Assembly (NCBI GenBank): GCA_001643675.2
Contig: LSRY02000012.1
Span: 310,001 to 374,000 of the forward strand
DNA from: Monocercomonoides exilis PA203
Lineage: Eukaryota; Protista; Preaxostyla
Reading direction: 5' to 3'
Length of the DNA stretch: 64,000 nucleotides
In this document: positions 10,819 to 36,449 of the stretch, piece by piece
Position numbering within the stretch: position 1 is the stretch's first letter
Layout: the number at the start of each line of letters is the position of its first letter
Notes under the pieces: model-generated
Told to the model about the DNA's origin: nothing
The model's database searches: none
Seen by the model: only the letters and a program-made list of their open reading frames with translations
Position numbers and translations under genes: made by a program

Positions 10819-11112
10819 CTTCTTTCTTATCATTAATTATCAAAAATAATTGGATTTTCTCGGAAAACCCAACTTTTTCACCTTTTCTTAACCCCAACAT
10901 ATAAAATGCGAAAACAATTAGTCGTGTAACACAAAAAAATCTTCAATTCAGAGCTTGTTAAAGAAGAGAAATAACAGAAATATAAATACAATGGGTGCGA
11001 TCAAAATAGGTGTCGATTGATTCCACTTTTATCAAAAAATCAAGGTATATTCACAGAGAACGTGACAAAAAAATTTCTATGAAAAAATAAAAAAAAACAC
11101 AGAAAAAAAAGA

Positions 11113-11199
11113 GCTTTGGAAGGAGTCGAACCCCCGACCTTTGACCAACGGAATATCAATAGTCGAGGTAGCTACCGCTTGCGCTGCTCGAGCCAAAGC
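11113..11199 (-). ncRNA. tRNA-like / Pol III-type element (not a canonical tRNA)
   Basis: Minus strand has an A-box-like AGCGCAAGCGGTAGC, a B-box/T-loop GGTTCGACTCC, a closing stem GCTTTGG/CCAAAGC and a downstream T-run (A8 on + at 11103-11110). No clean anticodon arm. Confidence 0.55.
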
Positions 11200-11396
11200 C
11201 CAGCTTTGCTTTCTTATGACTCTACTTAAACCTGGCTAAACCCTAACCCTAAAAATCCAAAAAAGATCAAATTTTTTTGTGTGCTAACCCTAAATAGAAG
11301 AGCGGGAACATAACCCTAAACCCAAGATCTGTTACGCTAACTAAACCTCTGCGTCACCCTAAAAAGCAAAATCATTCGTCAGTCACTTCGTCACTC

Positions 11397-11398
<2 letters not shown>

Positions 11399-11449
<51 letters not shown>
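11399..11449 (-). repeat. Poly(T)51 on + / poly(A) on -
   Basis: Uninterrupted homopolymer, much longer than any other in the window. Confidence 0.95.
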
Positions 11450-13079
11450 CAAGAAATAATTGTTTGATCTTATTTTCTGCAATTGAGTATTGATTTTGAA
11501 AATGTTTCAAAAAAGAAAAAATTCATATCGAAACCCATATTTAAATAATCAAAATTCATTGTCAAACTTTTGAAAATAGAAAGCAATAAATCCTGTTGAA
11601 TTTTGAAAGAACTTGTTAGGAATGTTATTTGCCAATGAAATAAATTTGAAAAACATATTTAACATCCTGGGTTCTTGTGGGAACAGTCACAATTTAAAAA
11701 GATCAATTCTGTGGGAAAAACATGATGGCATTATTCATTATCTCAGATAACAGATGTTGAAATTAATAAAAATTTGATCAAGAATTTGCTATCTCTTTAT
11801 CTATCCATTTAATTGTATTTAATCGTTTTGCTTTTGTTATTAAATATCTTTCTTTTTTTGCTTTCATACATATCCTCATTGCATTGTTCTTGACTTTTTT
11901 CAGCTTTTTCTTCTTTCTATTACATCACAGCTTTTCATCAGAAGTGAACAAAACGCAATGATTGTGAAAAATGTGTTCCCTATTTAATGATTATCCATTA
12001 TCATCTTTTTTAAGTTCTTTACCTCTCAGTTCTTTGACTGCTATTATTTTTCAATTAACATTCTTCTATCTTTCAGAACGAAATTCATTCATGTTGCAGA
12101 AGCACATACTCAGTCTCCTCCCCATTGAATAATGCATCTTCCACAGCAAGCCACTCTTTTTTAGCCGGGGCGATAACATTGTTTTGAAAAGTTAGCGCTC
12201 AGCACCTTCGTGAAGAGCGCCTTTGATGCAACCATGGTCTCTTCATCTGTAACAACATTCACATCAGAGCATTAACATCGAGGCAACCACTGAAGATCAT
12301 TGCACTTCAATCTCCGCATCACACACATGCATAAATGAATGGCTTCGCTTGCTTCTTCCACGCAAATTCAGATTCTCATTCTTCTTTCTGTGCTCTTCAT
12401 CCTCTTCGATCTTCATCAGAAAAAGCAAAAGAATTTCATTTGATATTTCTTCATCTTCTTTTCCTTCCTCAACTCCCTCCTTTTCTTTTTCTTTGTTGTT
12501 TTCTGTTTTCTTTGTTTTTTTTTTCAAATCAAATGAAATATTATTTTTGTTGGAAAATCCTCGAAATTTGATTTCTTATTGAGACATTCATCTTTCATCG
12601 CTTGTTTCATTTTAAGATTAATTAATAATTGTGTTTTTTGTTAATAATCGAAATGTCATTTGCTTCCTTATGCTTTTATTTGTTAAATGAAATAAAGTTG
12701 AAACATATTTTCAATTAGATGAAATGATTTGAAAGAAATTAAAAACAGAAGGACAAAGGAAATATTGAACATTTTTGAACATTAACAGTTTTCAGGGAAT
12801 TGAATATAACATTATCTTTCAATTTTTTTCAACAAAACAAAATTTGTTGTTCCATGAATATGCGTTAACATTTCCATTTTTTCTAAAACATAAATTGAAT
12901 GAAATTTTCAATCATTTTGAAATCATCTTTTATAAATATATATAAAAAAGGCGATAGGGTTTCACGCATTCACTTTCTCAATGAACACTGAAGCCTCCGT
13001 TTCTTTTGCCTCTTATCATTAACATTATCCCTATGAGATTAGAAATAATGATCATGATCTTTTATTTTCATTTTTATAT

Positions 13080-14522
13080 ATGAGGAACTTGGCGCGTTCT
13101 ACACATTTGAACATAGCCTTTGTTCCAATATGCACATCATTTTATTCCTGGTTGGGTGTTATTCCTCCCTGTGATGCTGATCAATCCATGAAAGTTGACA
13201 GTTGCATTGATTTTCAACTTATCGCGAACAAGTCTTCCAAATTTCGATCGGCTTTGAAAAAGAACAAACAAGCATACTGCAAATTTAATGAGAATGAGAA
13301 GAAAAGAGGTGCGGATGCATTTTTCACTGCGATACAGACAGCTGGAGTGGAACCTTCATTCTATCGAGCAACCGAAGAGAAAGACTATTTGGGCAGCATG
13401 AAACACAACCGGCTCTTAAAATGTACCATCTCTGCGGCATCGGCAGCGACCGCATTGAATTCTGGTGAGCCACCGCGCTCTTTGCGAAAGAGGGAACAGA
13501 AGATGATTTTCCGAAGCAGGATATGATTGCTCTGGCGGAGCCGTGGAGAGAAGGCTTCGGAAAACTTGTGCCTAACGGAGCAGAAAGGTTATTTGCGAAG
13601 AAGAAAGACGGAAGCATCTTGGACGAGGTTCATCCGCTTGTTGTGAATCGGGTGTTTGCGATGCTGCAGACGAAGCGTCTTTTTCCGGTGAAGATAAACT
13701 TTGTACCTGACGTGTTGTTGTACTGCTATCCAGTCATTCTGAAGGAGAATAGCAGCCTTTTTGATTCGCTAGTGCATATGGGAAACAGTGAAGCCACGAT
13801 CGATTATGTTGCACAGTCTGCGGGGTATGGGCAGAGACAAGCAGATGAGCACATTTTGGAACAAGGGGAGAGAGACAAAGAGAAAGAAGAAAACAACGAA
13901 GAAAAAAAACCCCAGTGGTTAACGATGCAATGCTTTCAGATGTGGAGCTGCTTCATGCCGCGCTGCAGCTGGGATGTCAGTACATTAAAGAGAATGCATT
14001 CAACTATTTTGGCTTTATCTGCTCGAAATACTGACTGGTGAATGTGTTTGTGCAAAGCAACTGTTTGAGGAGCAGATGCGCCTGTCGCTCAGAGAGGAAG
14101 GAGCAGCGGTGAAGCAAAGGGGAAGCATGAGAGAAGGAGGAGAAGGAGGAGAAGAAGAAGAATGCAGAATCAATTAAGATGGAAGAAATAACTTATCTTC
14201 CTCTTCTTCTTCCTCCTTTTCAGTGCAGGAAGCGCTGAGGAGCCATCTTCACTGCACTCTATCTGAATTTCTTCTGTCGAGTGTGCTTTATTCACAGGCG
14301 ATGGCACAGCTTATGAGCCTGCAGAAGATATCGCCTGCGTACCACGCACTTCTGAGTGAATGTGTCAATGCTGCCTCATCTGTTGTGGCTGATAGGATGG
14401 TTGTTGACTTCATTCTCACACAGAAAAAATCCATTAAGGCTTTGGAAAGAAAGAGAAACAAGAAAGAAAAAGAGGAGGTTGATGCACCAGAAACTATTTG
14501 TGTCAAAATGTTCAATGATTGA
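13080..14522 (+). pseudogene. Disrupted gene copy of unknown product (cargo of the giant element)
   Basis: Three consecutive same-strand ORFs (13080-13526, 13523-14041, 14223-14522) with coding-like composition, broken by frameshifts or stops. Confidence 0.5.
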
Positions 14523-14636
14523 AGAATAAATGAATGTTTTAATTTTGGTAATAAAATATGAGAAGATAGATGTTTATTCTCATGTTAGTGATAAGCCTGA
14601 AATGAAAATGAAAAGAACAAGGAGTTAAATATATCA

Positions 14637-15620
14637 TTAAATATGCAGCAAGCAGTTCAAAGTGTCAATTGATAAACTCTGACGTCTTTCTCCCGCAATT
14701 CTTCGAGCCCTGGAAGATAATCTTTCACAAAAACATTCGCTACAAGGAGATTGGATTAGGCTGTGTGCAAATGATGAGTAAATTTTGTGAATGTCGCTTT
14801 TTCGAAACATATAAGAATAATAAATGAATGAATTATTTTCAATCACACATTTTTCGATTTCCATTTTTTCCAAAGATCTCTGAAACAACAGCAAACAACC
14901 TTCAATTATTTCTCCTTTTTCTTGACCAATAAAACTTTGAAAAGTCTCCCTAAAGCTGCAGACCATCCTCCCATACCAATCTCCAAACACTGCATCAAAA
15001 TTATCGAGCATTGTTTTCTCTTCCAGTTCGAAATTATGTGAATAAATTCTTTTCACTGATCCAAATGTCCCAAGGCACATTACATCATCATTTTCAACAT
15101 ATTCCTCCTCCAGTTCATGAAATTCATCATTTGTTGAGCAACAACATTCTTCCTCCTCATCCATAATATTGACGCTTTTCTGTTGTTCATCAAAATTTGT
15201 CTTTTTTTCTTCTTTGGAATGATATGCATTATCATTTGGATTTCTTTCATCAAAATCTTCCATATGGGTGATTCTTTTTGAAAAGTCTCAAATGTTCAAT
15301 TTTTTCAATAAATCGAAAATTTCATATTTTGCTAAATATTTTGTTAACAAAAAACAAACTTCACTTAAATGGAATCAATCACTTGATAATGTTATTTCAA
15401 ACATTCTTGAGGAGATTTGAGAGCTGAAACAGAAATTTGGGCAAAATAAGAAAATTTCGATTTTTTTGAAAATTAAACATTTGTGACTTTTCAAAAAGAA
15501 TAACCCATATATTCATCGTCAATTGCTTCGTTTACTGCACATAACAATCCGAATAGATCTTTGTCAAACTCTTCGTCTGATTCGTCCGCGCTGCTTTTCC
15601 ATCTCCATTTATAGTTAGCT
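14637..15620 (-). pseudogene. Acidic hypothetical-protein gene interrupted by a MITE
   Basis: Removing 15266-15506 plus one ATAT restores the frame ...LLCAVNEAIDDEY-MEDFDERNPND..., so the Met at 15263 is internal. Confidence 0.7.
15266..15506. mobile_element. MITE, 241 bp, GGGTGATT-ended, 4-bp TSD ATAT
   Basis: atat|GGGTGATTCTTTTTGAAAAGTCTCAAATGTT...AACATTTGTGACTTTTCAAAAAGAATAACCC|atat; long imperfect internal palindrome. Confidence 0.9.
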
Positions 15621-18049
15621 TGTTCAAAGAGTTTCAAAGAAATTCAATAAATCTATAAGAATATTATTTGAGCTTTTCTGGAAATTTTGTTGATCGAAAA
15701 CAAAAGGAATCAAACAAAATGTATCATTCATTGCTAAAACTGAAATTCTTTAACTCTTTTGAGTTTCAAAAATTCGTTCTTTGCTCATTTGTGATCTTTA
15801 ACGGTGTTTCTGAATAATAAATCCTTTTAAAAAACATCACTAAAGAAACAAAATGGGCAAGATCATCCAAAAAGTGTTTTATGAGGCAAACTGTGTCTGG
15901 ATCTTTGATTGACAGAATTTATTTGGCACATAATTTTTTTGATCATCCATTTTCAATGTTTTTTTTCGATTTCAAAAATCTACATAAACAAACAGATTTT
16001 GAAACCACATTTGAAATCGCAAACAATATAATGAAATTGAAATTTAATAACAAATGAGAAATTTATTATCAACGTTTAAACGTCCAGAAAAAAATTTTTT
16101 TTGAAATGAATTTCAATTTTTATAAAACATAAACCAAAAATGCCGGTTTCTTTTTAAATTATTAATTATTAATCAACAAATACAAAATATCAACAATCCC
16201 TGTGAAGTTCAGTAATTTCATGATCGATGATTTGATTAACAAATTCCATATTAAAAACAATTTGTTATTGTTCTTTCAGAAAACATCTACAAAAAAATAA
16301 ACGAACGCGATAAACGAAGGACGTTTTCGATAATTTGAAGATTTTAACAAAAGTGCATCTGTTCATTTTCTTCAATGATGAATAAATATGCAATGATAAA
16401 GTTTAGAAAAAAGTTTTAATTTTTTAGATATTCAAGTGTTTTTATAAAATCATGGTCTTGAAACAAAATGTTTCTTTTTCCTTTTCAATCAAGGTTTATT
16501 TGATTTGATTTGCTTATCAAATTGTTTCCTTTGATCATGGGCATTTAGAAAATATTAACCAATGAAAAGAAGCTTTTAAAACTGTTTAACTGGTATTTTA
16601 TGTATTCTTGGTTGATTTATTAAAAACATATATTCACCTTGATTCTATTCTTATCTTTTTCATTTATTGAAACAGTCAATATGACAGTTTTTCGGAAATG
16701 TTTTATTGTTTTTTGTTGTAACTTGAATTGGAAATTCAAAATTCAAACTTTCGATAGAACAATGGATTTTTTTTTTTATTTGAGAGCAAAATCGAAGGAG
16801 ATTTTTAGAGAAAAGATGATTGAAAAGAGAGAAGATCAATGAAATTCAGATTATTTCGAAGATTCCTTGAAATGGAACATAGCAATTGTTTATTTTTGAT
16901 GAAAGGAAAATTTATTTCGAAATAAAGAAAGGATAAATGGATGAGATAAAATGAAAAAAGGATTTTTCAATTATATCTTTATTTCCGTTTAAGAAAAGGT
17001 TATTATAGAGCTTTGTGTTCAATGGATTCAAAGGTTTCTCTCACCAGAGGAAAATGCAGAAGAGCATGTGAAAGAAGATAGGAAGCTATCCGCAAAAGGA
17101 ATATATGTTTCATCCGAAAACAATGCTTCAGAATGAATATGTGAAGTAGAAACGAACCGGATGAATAAGTTGGGAAACATGAGAGATGACAGCAAACTCA
17201 ACATAGCATATCAATCGGAAGAATACAGCAACTCCAACCTGACTTGGCAGGTATGCAAATGTTGCACAGAAGAAACCTTCAATTCATAAGAATTGAAAAG
17301 GATTAAAGAGTGAATATGATTAAAACAATTTGAACATAAATCTGATTGAAATTGCTGTTGATTTATCAAGATGCATTAAGTCCCATTTTGCTTGTTCATC
17401 CTAAGGAATCTTTTTTTCATTAGCTTGTTCATACACATTCATAGAATCAATCCGATTTTTATTTATTTATTCATTCCGTAGCAGTTCCCTCCTTCCCTGA
17501 TATCTTCAATCTTTTCACAAACAAATACAACTTTGAAGAAAGACAGAATTCATTCAAGAGACAATGCTGCAACATATTACCGAAGAATGTCATGCCTATA
17601 ATTCCAGTTGGGTGAAAAAATTTGAAAAATTACAATTTTCACCTGATTTGTTCCACAAAAAATCAACGAATGTTTTCAATCAACCGTAATTTTTTCTTGT
17701 TTGATTTATTCATTCTTTTATCTCAAACATAAGCATTTGACATATTTAAAATTACAGTTTTCTTCGTATATGTTATCAAACTGGTACAATTTTTAAAGTT
17801 TATTTGTATTTTTTTCTGTTTATAAACTGCAATTCATTCAACTTGAGTTTTCTTTTGCAACTTTTTTAACAAAATGAGTTTCACATATCTTTTATTTGAG
17901 ATATAACAATCATTATCTATGTAATCTCATAATGCAAATGAAACAAATTAACATTAGTTTATTATGGAGATTATTAATAATGATTGTGTGTTCCAACTTT
18001 TTTTTGTTCACTTTCTTGTTTGCTGTTTTCGCTCTGTTTTTGAGCTTTA

Positions 18050-21000
18050 TGTGTTTTGTGTGCTCTGGACTACGGAAAGAAGTTGACACCTACTTCACTG
18101 CCATCGCAGATAAAGCGCGCTGGGTCGCCGTTTGGGGGTGAAAGCACGCAATTGCTCTCGACGCCGTTCCAGCCTTCGAGCGCAACGAAGCGCGCTTCTG
18201 GGACTGCGGGCAAGCAGACGAAGTTGTTGGATCGATCTCTGACCCCCATTCGAAGAGAGAATGCGATTGCCACAAGTGTGTGATTTGGATATTTGTTGTT
18301 TTGTTTTTGATGAGTTGGCTGTCTTCTGTGGGTGTGGGGTTTTTGTGATGCGCCAGCTGTTGCGGGACTGGCCTTTGAGGAGCCTCGTGGGATGGAGGAA
18401 GACAAGACTGGCGATTTGTGTGGCAGTTCCTTTGAACGATGAAAAAAATGTGATTGAATTCTGTTTGGTGTATTTTTTTCAGGAACCCACCGTCGCAGAT
18501 TGACGACAGCGACTACTTCATGAGCCGGGCGAGGCTGCTGGCATCGAGGAAAATAACGTTTGGGGCGATGGAGCGACTGGGGAGCTATTTTATGCCGATG
18601 GAGGGGAATATGTAGAGAGAGTCGCGAGGGCCGCTGGTGACGTACACGAGGGAAGGGGTGAGGCGGCTGGGGGAGCGGTTTGAAGAGCTGATAGAGGCGA
18701 AGTGGATGGACCGGTTGGGGGCAGGGGAGCAGATTATGCACAACCAGATGTGCATTGATGTGACGCTTGGAGATGTGGGAGAGATGCTGGGGAATGCGGC
18801 ACAGCGAGGAAGGAGAGCTGCTGCACCAGATACGAGTGGAGTATGAGCGTGTGTATGGGGCGCTGTGGAAGGAGCAAGAGGCGGGGGCAGCGCGGGAAGG
18901 GCGGCTGCAGGAAGAGCTGAAGAACAAGGAGGAAGACCTGGAGAGGACGAAGGCGAATGCAGCGCAGATGCTGAGCGAGACGTGCGTGAAGTGCGAGGCG
19001 CAGGTAGCGGAGCTGGCGGGGGTGAAGGAGGGGCTGGGGCAGCAAATCCGGGAGCTGAAGGAGCAGCACGAGGAGGCGAAGCAGGAGATGGAGAAGCGGT
19101 ACTCGGAGTTCAACATGCTGCTGCAGAAGATCCGGGACGACGAGCGGATCTCGAAGCGGACGAGCGGGCTGGCGGAGCAGCTGCAGGAGAATGACAAGAT
19201 CATCCGGATGCGGGAGAGGAAGATCCTGGAGCTGAGCGAGAAGTACAATGCAGAGGTGAAGGAGCTGCAGGAGCAGCTGGCGGAAATGAAGGAGAAGGCG
19301 GAGTTTATTGATGTGGGGACTGAGAAGGAGAAGAAGCGGCGAACGCAGCAGGGCGGGGTGGTGAGTGAGGACAGCAAGGGAGCAGGAGCAGGAGCAGGGG
19401 TGCCGCTTGCTACGCCTTTTTCGTTGTCGTCTGCGGGAGGTGGAGTGGTTCCGTCTTTGGCGTCGTTGATCCTGCCCTTGGGGCTGTGTGAAAAGTTCCA
19501 GGAGAAGTTTGTTGTTAGCATCGGGGATGGCAGCGCTGTGATGGTTGGGCCAGACCCGAGCGGGAAGGGGGTTGTTGTGAAAGTGGGGAGCGGGGTGAGT
19601 GTTGTGGGCAAAGCAAACAGCTGTTGGGGAAAGTGTTCCAGTGGTGGAGAAGGAGGAGATATAACATGAGGCAGAAGAGAAACAAGTGGAGAAGGAAACG
19701 AAAATGATGATGGTGCTGTCAAAAGTGCAGGAGCAGAAGAAAATGAAGAAGTTAATGAAGAGACCTAGGAGTGACTGATTTTGCAGGTGAAGGAGCAAAA
19801 GAAACAGGTGGTACGGTGAAACTTTTACGTGAGCATGGAAGGTGAGGTTGATGAGAAAGGGGTAACTGCGCTGTTATTGCTGGAAGTTCCAATGGCGACG
19901 GAGCGGCTGATGAGAAAAGAATCATGGTCGTAGGGGCAGGTGGCGTCAGAAACGGTGCATGTGCTTCGGATGTAGCCCACGTGGAGGTCGTCTGTGCCGA
20001 TGGAGCGGCTGCTGACGTCGCTGAAGATGGGGCTGCTGCCGTAGCTGGTGCGTAAGCTGTCTACGTTCAGGGGGATATTCGGAGACAAGGTTGAGGCAGA
20101 AGTGGGCGGGGGTGGTGCCGGGTGGAGAGGGGCAGGGGCAGGGGCAGGGGTTTGGGGACTTTGTGTTCATGTGAATGTTGGAGAAACACATGGAGCAGAA
20201 GAAAAGTGAGCGGGTGCCGCAGGGGATAATCCACGAAGTGGAGTTTTTTTGGATGAAATTTGTGGATGTTAGGTTTTTGGTGAAGCTTGTGCCGGAGGAG
20301 TTTATGATTGACGAGCTATTGTTTTTCCAATTCTTCTAAACTGTGCTTGAAGGTGCGTCGAAGAAGAAGATCAAGATGTTATTTGGGGAGTTCGAAGGAA
20401 TGCAGTCGAAGAAGTGGGAGGCGGATAAATCTGTGTTTCTGGGGTTTCTGCAGAACTACTTCCGGGCAGAGGCAACGAAGCGGAAGGAGTCGATGAATGC
20501 GCTGTATGATGCGATATGCAGTGGCGATTCATCAACATCATCATCGGCTTCATCAACAACATCATCGTCATTGTCATCACCAGGGGCAGTGCGCAGAGGG
20601 ATCACGTACTCGGAGCTGGAGTCTCTTCTGTGTGTGTGCTATCCGCAGACGCCGCAGGCGCTGTCGCTGCGGATCTTCCGGGATGCGTACCGGCTGTCGG
20701 GCTGCTGTCTGCCATCGTTTACGTCTGTGCTGGAAGTGTGTCTGCAAAATGACTTCATGATGCGCTACTTGAAGCTGCCGGATGTGTGCGACACAACAGA
20801 CCGGTGGGCTCCTCTGAAAGCGTCTGAGAAAAATGCAGCTGTGAAGACGGTTTATTGCGGCTGGACAACCTAGTGTGGGTGCTTTCGGGGGTGTTGGCAG
20901 GTGTGTTGGCAGGGGTGTCAGCAGGGGGTAGGGCTGAAACAGCGAGAGGTGGTTGTACCGAAGGCGGTGACGAAGAAAGAAGTGAGGCGAGAGACGTTCC

Positions 21001-21250
21001 GGATGATGTAGCTGCTGGTGGAGCTGGTGGAGCTGCAGCTGGGGAGGAACGAGGCAGAAGGAGTGTTATGAATTTGGCTTCTGCAGAGAAACGGGAAGTG
21101 TTTGAAGCTGTTTCAATAGCCAATGGCATGCAGGCAGGAGGGAAGAGGAGCCATATTTTTCAATGTTTCACAATTGTCTGCTTCTTCAGCTCCATACTTA
21201 TAAGTTCTGAGTTCGAAAGAGATATCCATAAACAATATGTTCCTTTCTTT
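18050..21250 (+). pseudogene. Decayed GC-rich coiled-coil protein gene (weak resemblance to axonemal dynein light-chain domain proteins)
   Basis: Coiled-coil ORF 18767-19669 (EEGELLHQIRVEYE...) is linked by a frameshift to the upstream 18637 ORF; the 19850-20340 frame has several in-frame stops before ORF 20343-20873. Confidence 0.6.
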
Positions 21251-25395: not shown

Positions 25396-25445
<50 letters not shown>

Positions 25446-28400
25446 TAGATTCACCAGTTGTGAAGATTGAAGGAGAAGAGAAAGGAAGGATTTTGAGGAT
25501 TGAAGAAGAAAAGGAAACAGACGGAGAAAATGGAGTGGCAATGATATCATCAGATGTTCATCTTTCATTCGTTAACTTATCATTCAATTTGCAGAGTGAA
25601 TTGGGGAAGCATTCATCACTCATCACGATATAATCATCATTATCATCCTTAGCAACACTATCAATAATGAGCTGTTCGTTTGCTTGTGAAGATAAAGAGA
25701 AAAAGACGAAATATTGTGTGTTGAAGGAGTGAAGAGGATGTATTGTGATTGATGAATTTGTTCTTACTCACTTCAATCTGGCAAAATGTTTTTTGGAGTT
25801 TGGAGCAGAAGTGGAAGTGATTGATGTGATGAATGTGTCTGCTTCGAACACAATGATTTCAGGAAGGAGTCTGATATCGCTGAGTCAGCCATTGCTATCA
25901 AGCATGTTGATCGACAAAGCAAGAGAAAACGCAAAACAAAGAGTGAGGGTGAACAGCTCCTCATTTGTGAACATCACATGTTTGGAGAACAGAGCGTGTG
26001 CGTTGAGCGTGGGATCGTTCTCAGTCGGGATGGAGTGTGCGGTGGAAGGGTGTGTGCTGACGAAGTGCATGAGCGAGAGAAGCTTGGAAGGAGGAGGGAT
26101 GAAGATGCTGATGAAGAGAGGAGAGTCGGAAGTGAAAGTGAGTGGGTGTTCATTTGGGATGTGCGTGTGCTCAACAGGGAATGGAAGGGGAGGAGGGATA
26201 ATGATTGATGCACTCGATCCAAATCGAGTGCCAGATCAAATGCCAGCATCGCCACTCGGGCTGAGAATGGAGAACATCCGATTCATGATGAATGATGCAT
26301 TAGTGGGAAAGGATGTGTTCATCCGATGTGACTTGATTGAGTTGCAGCTGAATGAAAGGCTGTTTGGACTGGACTTCAGCCAGGAGGCACTGAAGTTAAA
26401 CAACTCGATGTGTGAGAGCGATGGAGAAGTGAATATTGATGTTGATCTGATTCCGTTGATCACATTTTATTATTCTTCACAGGTGTTTGTGTGTGTGAAA
26501 GGGAGCGACAGTATGCAATGTGGAAGACAGGATGCACCATGTGAGAGCATTGGAAATGGAGTTCAACACATTCAAGGAGGCATTGCGATAATGATAATTA
26601 TTGATGGAGAAGGGATGATGGGAGAGGAATGTGTGATTGGGGATGTGAGGATGGTGTCGATGGGGAGGGAGAAGGCGACAGTGCATTTTGAGGGGAAGAT
26701 GGAGGAAAGAGGAGAAGAGAGGAGCGTAATGGTTTTTGTGAATGAGAGCGTTGTGGAGAGGTGTTTGTTTGTGTTTGGAAGTGAGTTTGAGGCAAATCAC
26801 AAGTTCGTTTTGAAAGTGAAAAACGGATCAATGGAGATGCGAAGTTGCGAGTATATTTCATCTGCTGTTGAGCTGAAGTTGGACAACACGATTGTGATTA
26901 TGGAAAGCGGAGAATTGAGAATGTGGGAAATGGAATTCAGCAGTTTGCATCTGAGAGCACCATTGATTGTGTTGTGTGAAGAGTCGAAAGTGTTTTTGGG
27001 AGAAACAAACATATGGAATGTGACGTGTGAAGGAGATGCAGCTGTTGTTGTTGTTGGAGGGAAAGCAGAGCTTGAGATGAAAGAAATGAGCTTTGAGAAT
27101 ATTTCACTGTTGACGAATGGATGTATGTTGGTGATTGATGGAGCAGAAGAAGAGATACGAGTGACTAATTGCTCGTTTGAGAAATGCGTGAATATGAATG
27201 GGAAAGGAAGCATGATGGAGATGAGAGAAAGCAGGGAAGTGCAGTTTGAGGCATGTTTGTTTGATGGAGAAAGAAGCGAAGAAGGAGAAAAGAAAATCAA
27301 TGGGAAAACGAATGAGGAAGAAGAGATGTGCAAATGGTCTGGATCTCTTGTGAATATTGCAAAGAGTTCTGTTTTCATGAAAGTTTCAACAATCACAAAT
27401 TCACCAGAAGGTGAAATAACAATGAGTGGAGAAAGAATTAGAATAAAAACAGAAAACATTTAACATTATTTATTGAGACTTCTTCATTTTGCAGAAACTG
27501 CAATAATCAAATTCTTTTGTTGCAAATTTTATGTTGTTATTGTTTGAAATTGTTTTGATAGAGCTTCATGTTTATAAATATCTTATTCATTTTTGCTTGA
27601 TGTTTCATTCACGATTTTGAGGATAAAATGATTTAAATATTATTGAAAAAGACTTAATAAGAATTATTTCAAAAGTAGTTTCACAATTTGAAAAATTTAT
27701 ACGCTTAACTCGCTTTTCATTGTTTTAATTAAAAACTTTTCTATTTAAATCTGTAACATGTAATTATCAACGAAAATATGAAATGAATAAAATAATGAAC
27801 TTTTTACAAACAAATTCTCAATTATTCTCAATTCAAAATGATTTGGATACCTTTTAAGATTTATAAAACCAAATAATTTCCCGTTTCAATGCATTTAAAA
27901 AGAGAAATTCCGAATTAATAGTTATAAACAAGTGAACATATGTAAGTTTTTCAAAGATTCAAACAAATTTATCACTATTTATTCGTTAGAAAGTTTTGCC
28001 AATGTTTTTCGAGCCATTGCAACCTTATTTGAAATTAAAAATTTGCAGCTTTAAAACATTCAAGCGAAAAAAAACATGATAATCTGTTTGAAAAAAGGAG
28101 CTGTTTTTAAAATAAAACAAGTGGGCATATAATTATATACTTATTTTAACACATAAAAGCGAACAAACCACAAACTTTTGAGTTCGATTTCTGCTCAAAC
28201 AGCATATTTTACTTTTCATATAATAAATAAATTTATTGTGGGTTAGATCAAAGTCATTTTATTAAATTTTTTATTTTCAATTTATGTTTTTGTGATGAAA
28301 ATAAACAAATAAAATAAATTTATATTATAATAAAAACACATTGGATGTCCAAAAATCACATTTTCTTTTCAATTTGAATATTTTTCTTTGAAATTCATGT

Positions 28401-28561
28401 TTTTATGGGTCATTTTTCAACAATCATTTTTTTCAACAAGAAAAATTTTTTTCGAAAAATCGGTCCATAAAAAGTTTTTTAATAATTATTATCTATTAAT
28501 TCGTTATAATTTGAGGGTTTAAAAACGCAAATTGCAAAAGGAACGCGTTTGAACCTATGCC
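23118..28561. mobile_element. Pack-type TIR element (5.4 kb), ~550-bp GGCATAGG-ended TIRs, 8-bp TSD GTTTCGCA
   Basis: 23118-23666 is the reverse complement of 28014-28561, near-identical except one ~65-bp patch; gtttcgca at 23110-23117 and 28562-28569. Confidence 0.97.
23876..27463 (+). pseudogene. Captured internal fragment of a large beta-helix-like (GGG/CxFxxC repeat) putative surface-protein gene
   Basis: ORFs 23876, 24122, 24431 and 25745 lie in one frame separated by stops; repeated GGGIM/GKNVF/DxxxCGxxxxPC modules; both ends abut AT-rich element sequence. Confidence 0.8.
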
Positions 28562-28569
28562 GTTTCGCA

Positions 28570-31500
28570 TCGAATTTCTATTCAGAAATAACTGAATAAA
28601 TGCTTTTTTCGGATCTATCTGCATCTCGTTAAAGTGAAAAGTGCGCAGATGTCTGGAATTTTATTGAGGAAAAATCCACTTATCACGCTGTGAAAATGTT
28701 GAAGTTCATGTTCCTTCACACAAATAAAGGAAAAAAGTTTTTCACAAAGATTCAGAAAATTTTTGATGGTTTGTTATTGGTTTTTTCATTTATTGAGGTT
28801 ATAACTTCCATTGTTCAAAATGGCAACTTCAGAAAAATGGAAATGTATTTTATAAAGAATAGCAAGTCTATATAATTCGGAGGACAACAAGCATGTAAAA
28901 GTGGCACTGTTGAAAACAGTTTGCCATGAATATAGCTTCGATCAATTGGAGAAGTATGGATTTAATTGCACAATAGGCAATTATAAATATGCAAAACAGA
29001 GCTCCTCGAATTTAAGTTTCGATGTTTCTCAAAATAAAAGGCAATCTTTTAATAACACAAAATCAAGTTTGTTGGTTCAAAATGCAATTTAAAGGATTAT
29101 TTCGATTCATCAACTTATTCTATTGTTTAACTCAGAATTAAGTTTTGAAGATGAAATCAAGTTTGAAAAATTCATTATGACCAACTCAACAGAATCTTCT
29201 GAATGTTCAAGATTTGAGAAAAAATACAATAAAAGTTTGTCATATTTGTTAATAAATTAAAAACTTCATATTTTTTTCGATCATAAATCTTTTTTGAAAA
29301 AATCAGAGAAAAAATCACTCGAAACTTATAACGACGATTTCATAATTTTGAATTGTGAAGATTTGCATGAAAAAGACGTTGATCCACTTCGTAGCTTTTT
29401 CGAATCAAATTGAACTGTTTCGAACAACATTTCGGATTCATTTGCAGATGATAATGTGCAAGGACAAATGGAAGATGATAGTGACAATGATTTATTCTTG
29501 GACGTTGATAAAACAGATGATATCGACTCGATTGATCATTCTTCCATCAGAACGAGCAAACAAATTGAGTGTTCTTGCAATGGAACACAAGAAGCGCAAT
29601 CATTTTCTCAAATATCAGACATAGCAATGGATATTGAATTACCTTCAGATGAATCATCCAGAATTATTCATGATGATTCAAATACTTGTGATGTGATTTC
29701 CATCTCTGAAGAAAATGAAATTATTGTTGATATGGTTGATACACAACCATTTATGGATTATTGTCCATTTACACCTTTGCCAAACATTGGAAATACCTGT
29801 TGTGTTGCATCCTTGGTTTAACTGTTTCGATCATTATTTCAACGATGTGGTCAATTGAAAAGGCGAGTGGGGAAGTTCGCTCAAATATCATTGAATCTTC
29901 ATTCTCTTTGCGCACCTGAAATAATAATGGACAAAGCTCGAAACTCGAAAGAAGAAGTGAAATGGACGAATGAATTCTTCACTCGTTGGTACAAGAAAAA
30001 CAATCTATCAATTGGTTGCCAACAAGAATTGTACTGTGTATTCGCAAAGATGTTTCAAGATTTAACATCTGTGACACCAGAACTGAATAATTTAATGAAC
30101 ACAACAATCTGTTATCCAAGAACATGCACGATTTGCAAAGAATCCTTCAATGGAGCATCAGAAACAACTCCAATAATCAGGGTTCAAGGATCCAGCATTC
30201 GTGATGCATTGAATAATTCCTTTGAACTTGATGAAAACAATTCGAATAATCGCAAAGCCTTTTGTTCCAACTGTGATGCTGACACTTATCATTTATCTAA
30301 ATTCAAAATTTCTCACTTCCCTCGATTCTTGACTTTTTCACTTGAACGAATAACTAACCAAAATTTAGAAAACTACAAGATTCATTTATCATTGTCATTC
30401 TTCAATGAAAAAGGACATCAGAAGGTGAGTGACATTACAACAAAAGATGGAGACAATTATTCACTTATATCACAACTGTTTTTCACAGGAAATGACAACA
30501 ATGGTCATTTCTTTTGTATTTGCAAAGAAAGAAACAAATGTTCTCAAGATTCCTCAATGATAAATGATTCATGGTTTTTATGCACCGATGGAACAGTGTC
30601 AAAAATATCCAATGAAATTTCAACAGAATTTACTTATCATTTGGCAAATGGAGCAAAACCATATATATCTGTTTACGAAAAGATAGAAAAGAGTGTGAAT
30701 GATAACATCAGCAATGTGTTATCTCCAAACTTGATATCAACAGTTGTTCATAACGAATTGAATTCGAGAGATAACAGAAGCATTAATCAATCATTTCTGA
30801 ACCTGAATGAGGACGAACAAATAACACCGTTTATTCAATCAAATAGTGATTCCTCTTTTGCCAACGATATCGGAGATTCATTTCAACTTCCACCCAACTC
30901 AACATTTCACTCATCTCAGCAATTAACCTCAACATTTCAACATATCAATTCCACATATTCTGCTTCAACTCAAACATTTCAGTCAGCACCTTTAACTACA
31001 AACACAAATAATAAACATAAATTATCTTCAACTGTTTTCCATCCTTCAATTTCTGACATTCCAGCTCATTCTTCCAATTATTAAAGAAAACCAAAAAAAT
31101 CTGTCAGATTAATCAACACATCGAAAGTCAAGCTGTTCGAAAAGATGAAAGATGAACTTGATATAGAGATGTCGCTAAGCACATTTTATAAGAGGACAAA
31201 AAATCTCAAAAAGGCAAAAAAAAGAAGTGATCTTTGCGACTTGTGTGTCACTTTTGAAAGTTTACATAAAAAGAAGAATTTCCTCAAGGCAAAAAACGAA
31301 ACTTTATGTGAGAAAGATCAATCAACATTGAAATTAATCGAAGATCATCGTAAACTAGCTAGACATCAACAGCTTTATTTCCGTCAATTGAAGGATAACT
31401 TAAACTCAGATGAAGCTTTGATTCTATTTGATTTTAAAGAAAATTGGTCCCTGCCAAAACGTAAAAATCAAATTTGCAAAGATTTCTATGAAAAAGTTGA

Positions 31501-32350
31501 AGTTTCTCAACTGTGTGTTATTGGATTCATCAAAGATGAGAAAGGCAACTTGGTCAAACACATATTCAACTTTTTTTCAAACACTCTATCGCACGATTAT
31601 CGCTTTTCAATTGGTTGCCTTCAAGAAGTGTTAAATCACCAGTTGTTCAGTCAGAAAGATTGTTTTCATTTCATATGCGATACAGGCCCCCACTTCAGAA
31701 ATTCCTTCCTTCTTCACTATTTGCTGTCAGACAATTCTTCATTTGCAAAAGGGAAAAAAACTACTCTATCATTTTTCTGCGAACACCACGGAAAATGCGA
31801 ATGTGATGGAGAATTTGGCCATTTATCAAAATGCATTCAAAATGAGCTTGACGATGAAACAGTTATGGAAAATGTTGATGATCTCATAGCGTTCTTTCAA
31901 AAAAATGCATCTCATTGTGCCTCATACAAAAGAAATTCTATTGATGGAAGAGAAAAGCTGCATCGTCACTTTTTAAGGTTTGAAATAACTTGTTTCGGTT
32001 TTAATTTCTTTAATAATATTTTTCATTGTTTATTCAATAAATTCTTTGTTTGAATCGACAACAGGTTTTATCCATCAAACAAAATACTTTGGAAAAAAAT
32101 GGAACTGAAAAATATGAAAACTTATTTATTTTATGAAAAGCGTGGAGGTGAAGTTTTCAGATCAGTCGCATCGCCATCCAACGGCAAAGGAAAATACAAA
32201 GTGCAGTTCGGAGAAAAAAGAGTTAGAGACGAGAGGCCTTTAAAAACATTTAAAACTCGAAACAAAACTTGCCAACCACACAGCGTGGGAAACAATACCT
32301 TAAGGTTGTTTGAGAACAGAAAAAAACTGGACAATCAGATTTTTAAATGA
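28570..32350 (+). pseudogene. Sola-like DDE transposase gene with an in-frame USP (peptidase C19) domain; intron-containing, disrupted by stops and by the 23118-28561 insertion
   Basis: Transposase motifs SDLCDLC...H, LFDFKENW, CDTGPHF and EHHGKCECDGEFG (31145-32053), last exon 32099-32350. USP motifs LPNIGNTC, QQE, CTIC/CSNC, GHFF, WFLCTD and PYISVY (29770-30680). ORFs 29456, 29855 and 31145 share one frame. Confidence 0.8.
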
Positions 32351-32475
32351 ATTTTTTTCATAATAATGTTGTTCTTTTTATTGATTCTTTTGAATTTGTT
32401 TTTATTCAAATTTTGTTTCTTGAGTTGTCTGTTGCTCAAGCTTTGAATTATTGTGAAAACAATAATTTCAAAGTA

Positions 32476-32604
32476 CCCTCTTTTGCGCCTGTGCAAAAAC
32501 ATGAGGGCTAGGCTGATTCCGTCCTGGGACTGTGCTGTGACCGGTCCAGCACAGTCCCTTGAAGGCTTTGGGTCCAGAATCAGCCTCCCAGGGCAGACGC
32601 TCTT
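32476..32604. other. GC-rich double-hairpin structured sequence 3' of the transposase
   Basis: Stems ccctc/gaggg with ttttgc/gcaaaa; aggctgattc (32510-32519)/gaatcagcct (32577-32586); gggactgtgctg (32526-32537)/cagcacagtccc (32547-32558); embedded in very AT-rich DNA. Confidence 0.7.
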
Positions 32605-33148
32605 GAAACAATTTTTGAAATAAAACAAATTTCATTTATTTTATTGAGTTCTTTAACAGTACTGTTAATATTACTAATTTTTGACCATTTTTTTCAATTT
32701 TTTTGTAGAAATTTATTGTTTGGCTCTTTTGAATAACAAGTTGTTATTAGATAAAATATTGTTTGAGTACAATTTTTTTGTTTTGAAAAAATTACTAAAA
32801 TACAAATGAATGAAGAAATAGAAAAGTGGATTTTTGATGTTTTCCATAAGAAAAAATAATCAGAAAAGTCAAACATTTAACAAAGAACAATATTTGAAAA
32901 AAATTATTTAACATTTGTAATTTTTAATGAAGGACCGAAAAAAAGGACGATTTTGATAAAAATGTGCCATTTTGTCAAGAATTCGTTTTCATCAACATGG
33001 ATTTGCAATATAATTCAAGAAAAATTTGTTTTAAAAAATGACAAGTCACTTAAAAATGACATCAGTGACGGGAAGTGCCAAAATAATCGAAAAATGACAA
33101 ATGATCAAAAAAAGTGACGATCAAAAAAGTGCGTATCTGAAAAATTCA

Positions 33149-35958
33149 TAGTTAGGGAAAAAACCCGCACAAAATTCGAAACTCGTGCACATGGGTTCAA
33201 AAAATAGTAATTTCTTTATGGATGACAAATATGTATTTCAAATCGCTCAATTATTTTCTCATTAAGTAAATTTTTACAGTTTTAAAAACATATTCTTTTT
33301 TTAAAGGGTTTCATCCCTTAAAAATTCAAATGGAACAGAAACAGTTTTTTTAAAGAATAATTTTTTGAGTGTTCAGTTATCGAAAGACTTCTTTTCCAAA
33401 AGTGTTTATTTTATTGCTCTTAGATTTCTTATTCACTCAATTGTTATTTATTAAACACTTTATTAATGTGTTTCTGAAACGTTTTAAATTTTTCATTAGA
33501 ACTTCATGTTTAACCGCAACATTTCGTGAATGAAAAAAAAATATTGAAACAAAAGCAAATACAAGCCATATTATTTCATATTTGGATTGTCTTTTTGAAA
33601 CATTTTTTCTTTTAAACATAAAGAATTTGAAATTTGAAACTTCGTTTTCTGCTTGTTAAAATATGGAAATCCTATTCTTTGGAAGTTTTCATTTGATATA
33701 TTTTTCTATTGTGTTCAGCTTATCCTTTCAAAAAATAATGAAATAATATATATTACAAATAAGGACAAAATTATAGAGATAAAAAAATGATTTCTTTAAA
33801 AAGGAAGTTTGTTTTCAATTATCTTTTTGCTGCAATTAAATAGTTTTGCTTATTCAATAAACAACTCTTTCCCACTCATTTGAAATTAATTGTCAATAAG
33901 TTGCATTGGTGGAATGCCTGATAATCGATACTGATCCTCTTGTTGAAATAAATGATTCCATCAAATATATAGAATTAAATATATCATCTTTTTTCGTTGG
34001 AAATGATATCTTGTTCCTTCATTTTTCGAAATATATTTTAAAATTCAGTTTTGTAGTTAAATTTTTAATGTTACAAGTTATCAATGCACATCCTCAAAGT
34101 TGTCTACAGAAAAATAAGAATATGTTCAACTGCAAATTTGATTTTGTAAATTGCTGTTTTTATCGTTTGCTATCACAAAATTGTTCAATGAAGATAATGT
34201 GGTTTTGATGAGCTTTCATTTGGAAAATTCATATTTTCACTGAGAAAACAACAAATGCCACATCATTTGACATTGCTTTTGCATTCTTCCGTATATCATT
34301 CAGAAAAGTTAAAATAATTTATGATCTATTTAACATGAGTCGTTTTACCGGTTTTGATTGATGAATAGTTTGTGAAGAATTCTGATGGAACAGATATCTA
34401 TTTTGCTTCCGTTATTCAAATTGATCCTAAATATTTAAATAATATTTTATCATTTTTCGGTTCAATTGATGAAATGTTTGTTTTTCAAGTTCCTCCTTTT
34501 CGCTATCAGCACTCACTTCAACAGCACAATGCAGTTTCTCTGATTCAAAATATGTATCTGTTCAGTCATCTCGTGCAACTTGCATTTGTGTGAATTATTG
34601 TAAGGAAATTGTTGATAAAATTTTCCATCCAGCATTCTGTCCTTGCAATACAGAAATTTGTTGTTGTTGGCTACATATGACTTGCTCCAAGAACAGTTCC
34701 GCCCATTCTTTTCACTCTTTTCTTGCTCATTGATGATCCTTGGATGATACAATAACGCATTCGAATTGCATCTCCTCCACTTTTACCAACAGAGAAATTG
34801 CTTCATACCAGTCCATAAACGTTCATTGATGAATATTCTACAAATGGAGCAAATGAATTCATCAAAAAAGTTAAAAAAATTCACAAAAACCTTCAAAATC
34901 GCAAAAATGTCCAATGCACTCGTTTTTCACAAGCTGACATATGAGCACACTGCAAACAGAATAGGCGCAATTTTCGTATTGCTCTTTCATTCGTATCTAT
35001 TAGCATTTTATTGGTTCGTTCTTTTCTCCAATCAAAAAAATCCTATTTATTACTTGAGGAAATTTGACATTCTGCATCACATGATAGAATTATTCATTTG
35101 CATTCTGCTTCGGAGTATAAATTTAAACAGTTTATTTCAAGAATTGATAATTATCAAAATTTGAAAAAATGAATTTATTATATAATTAACAAAATCAAAC
35201 TTAACAAATAATTATCCCTTGATTAAACAAACTCATTTAAAGGATATGGATGTTCACAAATACCCAACATTATGGCATAAATAAGAAAAGTTTATTTCCA
35301 GATTTCTTATCAATTTTTATTTAATTTGTGGTAAATGAAACCATAAAATATATTTAACACTTTTTTGTTTTTTGGATTTATTATCTCATTCGAAAACAGA
35401 GAAATCTGCATTCAATTGAAAAGATATCGGTTTGTTCTAATTATGTTTTGCATACAGTATCATTTATTTCAAAATTTAAATTGTATTTAAACAGGATCAA
35501 CATTGTTTTTGTTCAACTGGTTTTTTATCAAGATTATCTGTAATGTTTTTGAACTTTTTCCATATTTTCGAATCCTTATTGAATAACGATTTTGATTCAG
35601 TTGTGATCATTGTTTTATATCAACTCAAATTGCTATATTTTCACATCAAACATGATTTTTAAATAGTAATAATAAAACAAAGAAATGAGATAAATATATA
35701 ATATTTAGAGCTTTGTATAAATATATTTAATATCAAATCCAACTCAAACAGTTTTCATGAAATTTCAATTTGAATATTAAAAATCGTTCGATCGATATTT
35801 CCATTTTAGAACAATTTTTTATTAAAATGGTGAAAATCACCTTAATACACAAAGTTGATTCACGAATTGACGCAGTTTCATATTTCCATAATTGACAAAG
35901 AATTTTTTGAACTGTTGTGCAGAAGTTTTTTCCCCAAAGTGGGTTTTTTCCCTAACTA
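33149..35958. mobile_element. 2.8-kb TIR element with a perfect 18-bp TIR and a short TSD (TCA, or AT if the ends are 1 bp further in); degenerate interior
   Basis: tca|TAGTTAGGGAAAAAACCC (33149-33166)...GGGTTTTTTCCCTAACTA (35941-35958)|tca; decayed minus-strand coding-like sequence inside. Confidence 0.7.
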
Positions 35959-36449
35959 TCATCAACTTTTCCATAACGAAAATTTTTCAAAAGTTAATTA
36001 TTGAAAATTAATTTATCAGCAAATAGCAGAAATATTGTTATGAAACTGATAATATTTCAATATATAAAAAATGCCTTTGTTATCAAAATGAATAAATTTT
36101 CTCGTTTTTAAAAAATGACATTTGAATTTTTGATTTGTCAGTCACTTTTAAAAATAGGCTCGTCACTGGCGGGGTGACGAGGAGGTTTAACGCTAACCCT
36201 AAAACCAAAACCAATCTATTAATACAGTGATTATTTTTGAATTTTGACCCTAAAAATAAAAAAATACTGGGTCAGATCAAAGCTGCCCCGTTCTCTGTGA
36301 ATATGCCAAAATCAAAATTTATTTGTAAAAAAAATATTTTTTAAATACACATAACTATTACAAAATGAAGTTATTATGAATGAAAGGAAGTCATTCAACG
36401 GGAAACGTAAAACAACACTATTAACAAAAACCAGAAAAAAAATTTTTTT

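Follow-up and report, generated by a model that had tools for sequence, protein, structure and literature searches.

Nested ("Russian-doll") insertions have been described for many TE-rich eukaryotic genomes, and Pack-type DNA transposons (Pack-MULEs and similar) are gene-capturing elements. Merlin elements of Monocercomonoides sp. PA203 have been surveyed, with more than 100 copies in at least seven families, TIRs of 23-29 bp and TSDs of 8 bp (PMC8101967). Besides this survey, we found no published description of mobile elements in M. exilis, which is a gut protist. The Sola superfamily is characterized by a DDD transposase and a 4-bp TSD, and its members are mostly 2-9 kb, although some exceed 15 kb (PMC10741241). 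There is no Pfam model for Sola (PMC5751038). As for deubiquitinases borne by transposons, those that we found in the literature are Helitron domains of the VTD and OTU types (PMC9741609).

The window, by which we mean the whole 64,000-nucleotide stretch of M. exilis PA203 DNA that was analyzed, contains GGTATATTCACAGAGAACG at 11044-11062 on the plus strand and GGCATATTCACAGAGAACG at 36289-36307 on the minus strand, which form an inverted match at 18 of 19 positions. Direct reading shows the same octamer, AAAATCAA, on both outer flanks (11036-11043 on the left and 36308-36315 on the right). When up to three mismatches are tolerated, exactly two sites for the 19-mer occur in the window, versus 0.06 expected from shuffles. 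The pair of ends with its shared flanking octamer is far beyond chance. The initial annotation, which had reported these inverted ends and their perfect 8-bp flanking repeat, located both correctly, and its description of the interior as nested elements and broken gene copies also holds. It interpreted the interval, however, as a single 25-kb mobile unit.

We conclude with high confidence that 11044-36307 is instead a 408-bp Merlin MITE whose parts were separated by a four-level nest of cut-and-paste transposons, acquired in successive insertions. Five other transposons push the MITE halves 25 kb apart, and no giant cargo element is delimited by the outer ends. The MITE lies at AAAATCAA and is interrupted at ACGCTAAC by a probable hAT element, which in turn contains a TA-TSD MITE, a 2.8-kb element and a 17-kb element; a 5.4-kb element lies inside the 17-kb one. 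All layers are bounded by inverted ends and a target duplication of their own, and for every one of the larger layers a paralogous copy shows the empty site.

The intact members of the outer family carry much of the argument. The 82-Mb genome has 19 forward and 19 reverse sites for the Merlin TIR. The initial annotation proposed pairing the 19-bp ends across the genome; their usual spacing turns out to be 407-410 bp with their own 8-bp TSDs, rather than a giant one. Nine pairs in the whole genome are intact at this spacing, with TSDs that are perfect or match at 7/8 positions. Apart from the pair in the window, there are about 15 pairs in all, which span 0.4-5.7 kb, and 12 of the other pairs have an 8-bp TSD that is perfect or 7/8. 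The family TIR is 24 bp long. In the window and in most family copies the ends begin with 5′-GG (GGTATATTC... and GGCATATTC...), although a few diverged ends do not.

BLAST with eight intact copies (407-410 bp) aligns MITE positions 1-298, which include the TIR GGTATATTCACAGAGAACG, to 11044-11341 on the plus strand with 86-95% identity. Positions 291-408 align to 36190-36307 with 93-97% identity and in the same orientation; this right part runs from a second ACGCTAAC to the other TIR (the reverse complement of GGCATATTCACAGAGAACG). A whole-genome search concurs with the boundaries of both parts. On this reading, the 19-bp pair with its perfect TSD represents the ends of one small element. The unit of this family is the 407-410-bp MITE, cut in the window at position 298 by one hAT insertion, and not a 25-kb mobile unit. 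Without its inserts the outer element measures 0.4 kb, in place of the roughly 17 kb that had been estimated.

The genome does contain some truncated or unpaired ends of the family (C39:199765-199872 and C80:229870-230137), so one might consider that two independently truncated MITE copies happen to face each other. However, parts 1-298 and 291-408 fit together without a gap, their overlap coincides precisely with the octamer next to the hAT TIRs, the GGT/GGC polarity of the ends is that of intact copies, and the outer 8-bp flanks are identical. A chance arrangement of this kind is vanishingly improbable, and the two ends do not come from separate small elements, but from one MITE.

An autonomous copy with the same ends (C10:32740-34247) is 1,508 bp long, has the TSD TAACATAA and contains an open frame of 359 amino acids. 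This frame matches the Pfam families DDE_Tnp_IS1595 (E 1.7e-23; 83.8 bits, versus a cut-off of 27) and Zn_ribbon_IS1595 (E 0.0031). Because the DDE_Tnp_IS1595 match occurs in a copy with common ends, the outer layer belongs to Merlin. The family thus combines 5′-GG TIRs, an 8-bp TSD and an IS1595-type transposase, and the earlier assignment of GG-ended TIRs with 8-bp TSDs to Merlin/IS1595 was correct. The suggestion of an undescribed family is not borne out, since Merlin elements with 8-bp TSDs and 23-29-bp TIRs have been published for Monocercomonoides sp. PA203 (PMC8101967). The 1,508-bp copy and the MITE have positions 1-194 and 371-408 in common, and the middle of the MITE (positions 195-389) derives from another repeat. 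A tRNA-like stretch at MITE positions ~75-160 was considered and dismissed, as it gave no ARAGORN or Rfam match. The outer MITE would have been mobilized in trans by the 1.5-kb autonomous copy or its relatives.

Five more copies of the same MITE are likewise interrupted, by inserts of 1-5 kb. A composite Merlin subfamily that moves as a unit was considered for the longer copies (C13, C19, C41 and C91) and rejected, as their inserts are mutually non-homologous. We read these longer Merlin-ended copies as independent nested insertions.

The element that cut the MITE is a non-autonomous, probable hAT transposon of 24,848 bp on the plus strand (11342-36189). The octamer ACGCTAAC, which intact MITEs contain only once (positions 291-298), flanks it on both sides; the left copy lies at 11334-11341, and the duplication is the 8-bp overlap of the MITE parts. 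The hAT TIRs are TAAACCTCTGCGTCACCC and TAAACCTCCTCGTCACCC (TIR TAAACCTC..CGTCACCC). About 18 other paired copies of the family exist, each 3.2-9.3 kb, and 8-bp TSDs are perfect or 7/8 in 16 of the 18 copies retrieved. Mapping three of these copies (L062, L064 and L065) colinearly onto the window assigns to the hAT element a backbone of only ~4.7 kb (11342-15264, 15508-15924, 32969-33148 and 35959-36189) and leaves three extra blocks, each with its own inverted ends and TSD.

Most of the hAT transposase gene is deleted in the window. A C-terminal remnant (14637-15263, minus strand) matches the 3′ part of an 861-amino-acid open reading frame in L062. The sole Pfam match of that frame is Dimer_Tnp_hAT (PF05699), located C-terminally and below threshold (E 0.011-0.065; 13.5-15.9 bits versus a cut-off of 21.4, with the full frame and the C-terminal piece). 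Its nearest named atlas clusters, as language-model neighbors, are mostly hAT/zf-BED with scores of 0.92-0.94, and neither a PDB sequence match nor a word-index homolog was found. The assignment to hAT rests on the 8-bp TSD, the sub-threshold Pfam match and the language-model neighbors.

Two of the extra blocks are small. The first is a palindromic MITE of 243 bp (15265-15507; TIR TGGGTGATTCTTTTTGAAAAGTC) that is absent from the corresponding site in L064. It has a TA TSD (15263-15264 and 15508-15509) and a 23-bp TIR, is 71% self-complementary and has three more copies among the loci retrieved (L052, L028 and L008). The TA TSD, short TIRs and small palindrome are features of Tc1/mariner-type (Stowaway-like) elements. 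The second block is an element of 2,810 bp (33149-35958; TIR TAGTTAGGGAAAAAACCC) whose ends and 3-bp TSD, TCA (33146-33148 and 35959-35961), were read directly. Its site is empty in all three mapped hAT copies, and its ORFs have no Pfam match.

The third block, a Sola-like transposon of 17,044 bp on the plus strand (15925-32968), has a backbone of 11.6 kb, the short TIR GGCACAT and the TSD ATTT (15921-15924 and 32969-32972). Queries spanning its boundaries break exactly at 15925 and 32968: the matches on one side come from four large-element copies, and those on the other from no fewer than eight empty hAT copies. The empty hAT copies hold a single 4-bp target, in that the matches of the two flanks overlap by 4 bp, and this target is ATTT-like in L064. 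Full copies of the large element occur at C91:1627153-1647169 (20.0 kb; 97-99% identical to the window copy), C9:1236539-1249773 (13.2 kb) and C1:807117-825750 (18.6 kb). The truly unusual part of the interval is this inner element. It is also the sole large cargo-bearing transposon within 11044-36307, and it differs from the proposed Merlin-type unit in its ends, its TSD, which is 4 bp, and its transposase.

The protein-coding region of the 17-kb element (29456-32053, plus strand) consists of three pieces in the same frame (29456-29821, 29855-31084 and 31145-32053), and corresponds to a USP (C19) protease followed by a DDD transposase. In the window copy this frame is broken by two in-frame stops, both TAA (29819 and 31082). 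The first piece ends with a Cys box, NIGNTCCVASLV, and the second matches Pfam UCH (E 4.8e-13). The third has 763 relatives; a diverse set of 35, of which only three touch DUF7869, shows no variation at D96, D179 or D221. Nothing above the Pfam threshold was found for the DDD domain, and sequence searches of the PDB gave no match either. In an AF2 model of the third piece (pLDDT 88), D96 ends strand 1, D179 is just past strand 4 and D221 is on the next helix. The best Foldseek matches are the RNase H-like cores of IstA, Mos1, Hermes and retroviral integrases. The third piece is accordingly predicted from the model to be a DDD-type transposase with an RNase H-like fold. By comparison with published descriptions, the TSD, the DDD triad and the size of the 17-kb element fit Sola, to which it may belong.

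The cargo is a GC-rich gene copy encoding a coiled-coil protein (17980-21300, plus strand), identified by genome matches and translation. It belongs to a multi-copy family specific to M. exilis, with more than 30 genomic matches (65-93% identity) and 12 annotated MONOS_ paralogs; a homolog search retrieved no relatives outside M. exilis. All three other full copies (C91, C9 and C1) carry the gene at the same position; the copy in the window is broken across several frames. A 550-amino-acid minus-strand ORF (18070-19722) was dismissed as a low-complexity, off-frame translation of this plus-strand gene. The evidence is evenly balanced on whether M. exilis has a Sola-like family of 13-20 kb in which a DDD transposase and a ubiquitin-specific protease form one protein and the lineage-specific coiled-coil cargo is fixed. 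We found no published precedent for a USP/C19 and a DDD domain in one frame. Should transposition require an active protease of this kind, the element would be an example of a cut-and-paste transposon interfering with ubiquitination in its host; no published case of a DDE/DDD element acting on host ubiquitination was found.

The innermost layer is an element of 5,444 bp (23118-28561) with TIRs of ~560 bp that start with GGCATAGG and whose arms are 95-96% complementary. Direct reading shows a perfect 8-bp TSD, GTTTCGCA, at 23110-23117 and 28562-28569. This insert is missing from the large-element copies in C91 and C9, where the flanks overlap by 8 bp. A relative with 77% identity is found inside another hAT copy (L068). 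The element may be Merlin-like or Mutator-like, and none of its ORFs has a match above the Pfam threshold.

The order of events would follow from the nesting, with the outer insertion first and the inner ones later. Such insertions may accumulate because landing in an existing transposon brings no cost to the host. Against growth in place stands that a composite assembled elsewhere and then moved once by the Merlin transposase would give an identical structure, given that cut-and-paste keeps no donor copy.

With the layers delimited, we return to a giant 25-kb Merlin-type unit, whether an original family or a composite built elsewhere, that transposed whole into AAAATCAA. The TIRs and perfect 8-bp TSD are real, the transposase acts on the ends so that anything between them could in principle move, and cut-and-paste leaves no second copy. 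Nevertheless, the genome contains no second copy of the composite or of the MITE/hAT junction, and the two TIR families abut only on this contig. Moreover, the interior, apart from a single hAT insertion, is a contiguous 408-bp MITE body, and the autonomous copy of the family is 1.5 kb. Also relevant is the age of the layers: given the 97-99% identity of the large inner layer to its C91 copy, versus a MITE divergence of ~6%, the Sola-like layer is younger than the MITE. Nor does the outer pair resemble a Pack-type element, in that its interior is separately delimited by the hAT TIRs and TSD and no second copy has the same interior with a different TSD. We therefore consider transposition of the whole unit very unlikely. 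A false nest created by wrongly joined repeats is extremely unlikely: the region is dense in repeats, but exact host duplications (8, 2, 4, 8 and 3 bp) are present at the junctions of the five nested units, and mis-joins of repeats would not create matching TSDs on both sides.

The locus is an ordinary transposon nest, and a false giant-transposon candidate is removed. The general trap is that widely separated TIRs, even when both they and their TSD match perfectly, may belong to a small element that nested insertions have stretched; this can be tested by aligning an intact member of the family with the two ends. In addition, this 25-kb stretch defines precisely the ends, the TSD lengths and the empty sites of six M. 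exilis transposon families: the Merlin MITE with its autonomous partner, the hAT, TA-MITE, 3-bp-TSD and long-TIR 8-bp-TSD families, and the large Sola-like family. The nest also yields a relative order of activity, in which the Sola-like element is among the youngest (97-99% identity between copies).

Merlin TIRs have a conserved terminal 5′-GG, and TSDs in this superfamily measure 8 or 9 bp. Compared with known systems, the outer family resembles the Merlin superfamily (IS1595/IS1016-related) in its 5′-GG ends, 24-bp TIR, 8-bp TSD and 1.5-kb autonomous element with a single transposase. The text of the published Merlin survey does not refer to MITEs or other non-autonomous derivatives (PMC8101967). 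The probable hAT family resembles the hAT superfamily in its 8-bp TSDs and short TIRs starting with TA, and its transposase ends in a candidate dimerization motif of the hAT type; it differs in that its Pfam match is below threshold and it has no PDB or word-index homolog. The 17-kb element is similar to Sola in its 4-bp TSD, three invariant Asp residues, RNase H-like fold, lack of a Pfam model and large size. Unlike Sola, it has a USP/C19 protease domain upstream of the DDD domain in one reading frame. Like Pack-type elements, it has taken up a copy of a multi-copy gene of host type, whose position is the same in all four copies of the element; by contrast, the outer Merlin pair has no cargo of its own and encloses only other transposons. 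As in other Russian-doll insertions, the layers interrupt earlier ones and have their own TSDs, and the outer ends lie farther apart by as much as all the inserts add up to. What distinguishes this nest from those in other genomes is that it brings together five element families, with TSDs of 8, 2, 4 and 3 bp, in 25 kb of a little-studied protist.

The inverted pair at 11044-36307 and its flanking duplication, described in the initial annotation, are real. Direct reading of the window (C6:310001-374000) gives GGTATATTCACAGAGAACG at 11044-11062 (plus strand) and GGCATATTCACAGAGAACG at 36289-36307 (minus strand), and AAAATCAA adjoins both externally. A search tolerating up to three mismatches finds these two sites and no others in the window, against an expectation of 0.06 from shuffles. 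In the whole genome (82.3 Mb, 101 contigs), we found 19 sites per orientation; the reversed control gave 0 and 1. Their pairs are spaced 407-410 bp (n = 9) or 1.4-5.7 kb (n = 6) apart, and 8-bp TSDs are perfect or 7/8 in almost all of them. Pairs elsewhere in the genome span 0.4-5.7 kb. Given this spacing and the TSDs, a 408-bp MITE, bearing GGT at one end and GGC at the other, forms the family unit.

A longer copy with the same ends (C10:32740-34247, 1,508 bp, TSD TAACATAA) has MITE positions 1-194 and 371-408 in common with the MITE. Its 359-aa open frame matches Pfam DDE_Tnp_IS1595 (E 1.7e-23) and also the IS1595 zinc ribbon. Since this frame lies between MITE ends, the outer family is classified on sequence grounds as Merlin, as had been guessed. 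The family was also proposed to be possibly undescribed in this lineage; however, Merlin elements are already published for M. exilis, with more than 100 copies, at least seven families, 8-bp TSDs and 23-29-bp TIRs (PMC8101967).

The giant cargo-carrying transposon envisaged between the outer TIRs is an artefact of nesting. The decisive alignment compares eight intact MITEs with the window, and all eight agree, mapping contiguously onto both ends. Specifically, 11044-11341 corresponds to MITE positions 1-298 and 36190-36307 to positions 291-408, with 86-97% identity. The two matches share exactly eight family positions, ACGCTAAC. Between the two occurrences of this octamer lies an insert whose left end reads TAAACCTCTGCGTCACCC and whose right end is the reverse complement of TAAACCTCCTCGTCACCC. 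Because contiguous MITE halves and their 8-bp overlap flank inner TIRs, a single MITE was cut once by an element bearing TIRs and an 8-bp TSD of its own. With that insert removed, the outer element measures 408 bp, not the approximately 17 kb estimated without nested inserts.

The locus is an extreme case of a common fate of this MITE, as five further copies are interrupted by inserts of 1-5 kb. These copies are on C13, C19, C43, C91 and C41 (loci L011, L012, L023, L024, L027 and L028), and all the interruptions fall within family positions 152-165, a clustering that could reflect an insertion hot spot or another family's target preference. Three inserts share the ending ...AAGTTC and are otherwise unrelated.

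The middle of the MITE, positions 195-389 (e.g., L005:1695-1889; 11238-11341 and 36190-36288 in the window), has more than 15 other genomic matches, at 82-86% identity and without Merlin ends; the MITE is therefore chimeric, joining Merlin termini to a different repeat. Two pairs of transposon copies, L015/L016 (C30:603818-604224 and 610247-610653; palindrome spacer about 6 kb) and L072/L078 (C19:1095102-1098876 and 1101676-1105442; about 2.8 kb), have flanks that are mutually reverse complements, and therefore lie in large inverted duplications rather than being independent insertions. By eye, 11110-11190 (MITE positions ~75-160) is tRNA-like, with a minus-strand T-arm GGTTCGACTCC; neither ARAGORN nor Rfam gives any hit there.

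The inner TIR occurs in about 18 paired genomic copies of 3.2-9.3 kb, and the 8-bp TSD is perfect or 7/8 in 16 of the 18 whose sequence was examined. One copy, L062, has an 861-aa ORF (C-terminus …SECFCERLFSRARRIV…). Its sole Pfam match, with the full ORF and with a C-terminal piece, is Dimer_Tnp_hAT, which is sub-threshold (E 0.011-0.065) and located at the expected place, the C-terminus. Most of the nearest named protein-atlas clusters are hAT/zf-BED, and PDB and word-index searches gave no homologues. We assign the family to hAT with moderate confidence. Mapping of copies L062, L064 and L065 places the hAT backbone in the window at 11342-15264, 15508-15924, 32969-33148 and 35959-36189 (~4.7 kb), and its transposase gene is mostly deleted. 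The L064 copy, on C28, has its own nested 3.5-kb insert (L064:1685-5193, TIR TAGATACAATGCAGATT, overlap ~3 bp), with a TAG terminus similar to the one on the 2.8-kb element (33149-35958).

Three elements interrupt the hAT copy. The palindromic MITE at 15265-15507 (243 bp) has TA TSDs and further copies in other examined loci, and the element at 33149-35958 (2,810 bp) has the TIR TAGTTAGGGAAAAAACCC and the TSD TCA. The third, at 15925-32968 (17,044 bp), starts with GGCACAT, ends with ATGTGCC and has ATTT on each side. With its different ends, 4-bp TSD and USP-DDD transposase, it is the interval's only large transposon with cargo. When queries span the boundaries of this block, copies on C91, C9, C1 and C52 match the element side only and at least eight hAT copies match the hAT side only, the halves overlapping by the 4-bp target; in L064 the site is uninterrupted. 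Full copies occur at C91:1627153-1647169 (20.0 kb, 97-99% identical), C9:1236539-1249773 (13.2 kb) and C1:807117-825750 (18.6 kb), and partial relatives on C30, C42, C45 and C27.

Inside the large element is a fourth layer, a 5,444-bp element at 23118-28561 with TIRs of ~560 bp. Its arms are 95-96% complementary and begin GGCATAGG, and its 8-bp TSD, GTTTCGCA, is perfect. The large-element copies on C91 and C9 lack it, their flanking matches overlapping by 8 bp, and hAT copy L068 contains a relative. The element is a candidate Merlin- or Mutator-like transposon; neither of its two ORFs matches Pfam. Slightly to the left of the Merlin end, at 8422-10818, lies another GGCATAGG-ended element (2.4 kb), with TIR arms of ~200 bp (92% complementary) and a perfect 8-bp TSD, CTTCTTTC. 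The terminal octamer is common to both elements.

These layers fully account for the 25,264 bp: 416 bp of Merlin MITE, ~4.74 kb of hAT backbone, 243 bp of TA-MITE, 11.6 kb of large-element backbone, 5.44 kb of long-TIR element and 2.81 kb of 3-bp-TSD element, with short TSD duplications as the remainder. The order of insertion would follow from the nesting. Layer identities mostly agree with that order: ~94% for the MITE against its family, 82-91% for the hAT backbone against the nearest copy, and 97-99% for the large element against C91. A single transposition of the completed composite to this site is very improbable; the genome has no second copy of it and no shared junction.

A GC-rich copy of a coiled-coil gene occupies the same position in all four copies of the large element (~17980-21300 in the window). 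This multi-copy gene family, represented by 12 annotated paralogues and by over 30 genomic matches, is known from M. exilis only, with none found outside it. A single reading frame at 29456-32053 combines a USP Cys box (NIGNTCCVASLV), a UCH domain (Pfam, E 4.8e-13) and a 302-aa domain with 763 relatives in 1.8 billion representative proteins. Residues D96, D179 and D221 of this last domain are invariant in 35 diverse relatives. The AlphaFold model of the domain (pLDDT 88) shows an RNase H-like fold, for which the best structural matches are the IstA, Mos1, Hermes and retroviral integrase cores. Two in-frame TAA codons interrupt the frame. The first (29819-29821) is inside the Cys box, where Gln is expected, and similarity to the M. 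exilis paralogue MONOS_18616 runs past the second (31082-31084) and reaches the end of the USP domain. The frame is either a freshly pseudogenised copy or subject to read-through.

By its features, the large element fits the published summaries of the Sola superfamily (PMC10741241, PMC5751038): the transposase is of DDD type and lacks a Pfam model, the TSD is 4 bp long, and sizes above 15 kb occur.
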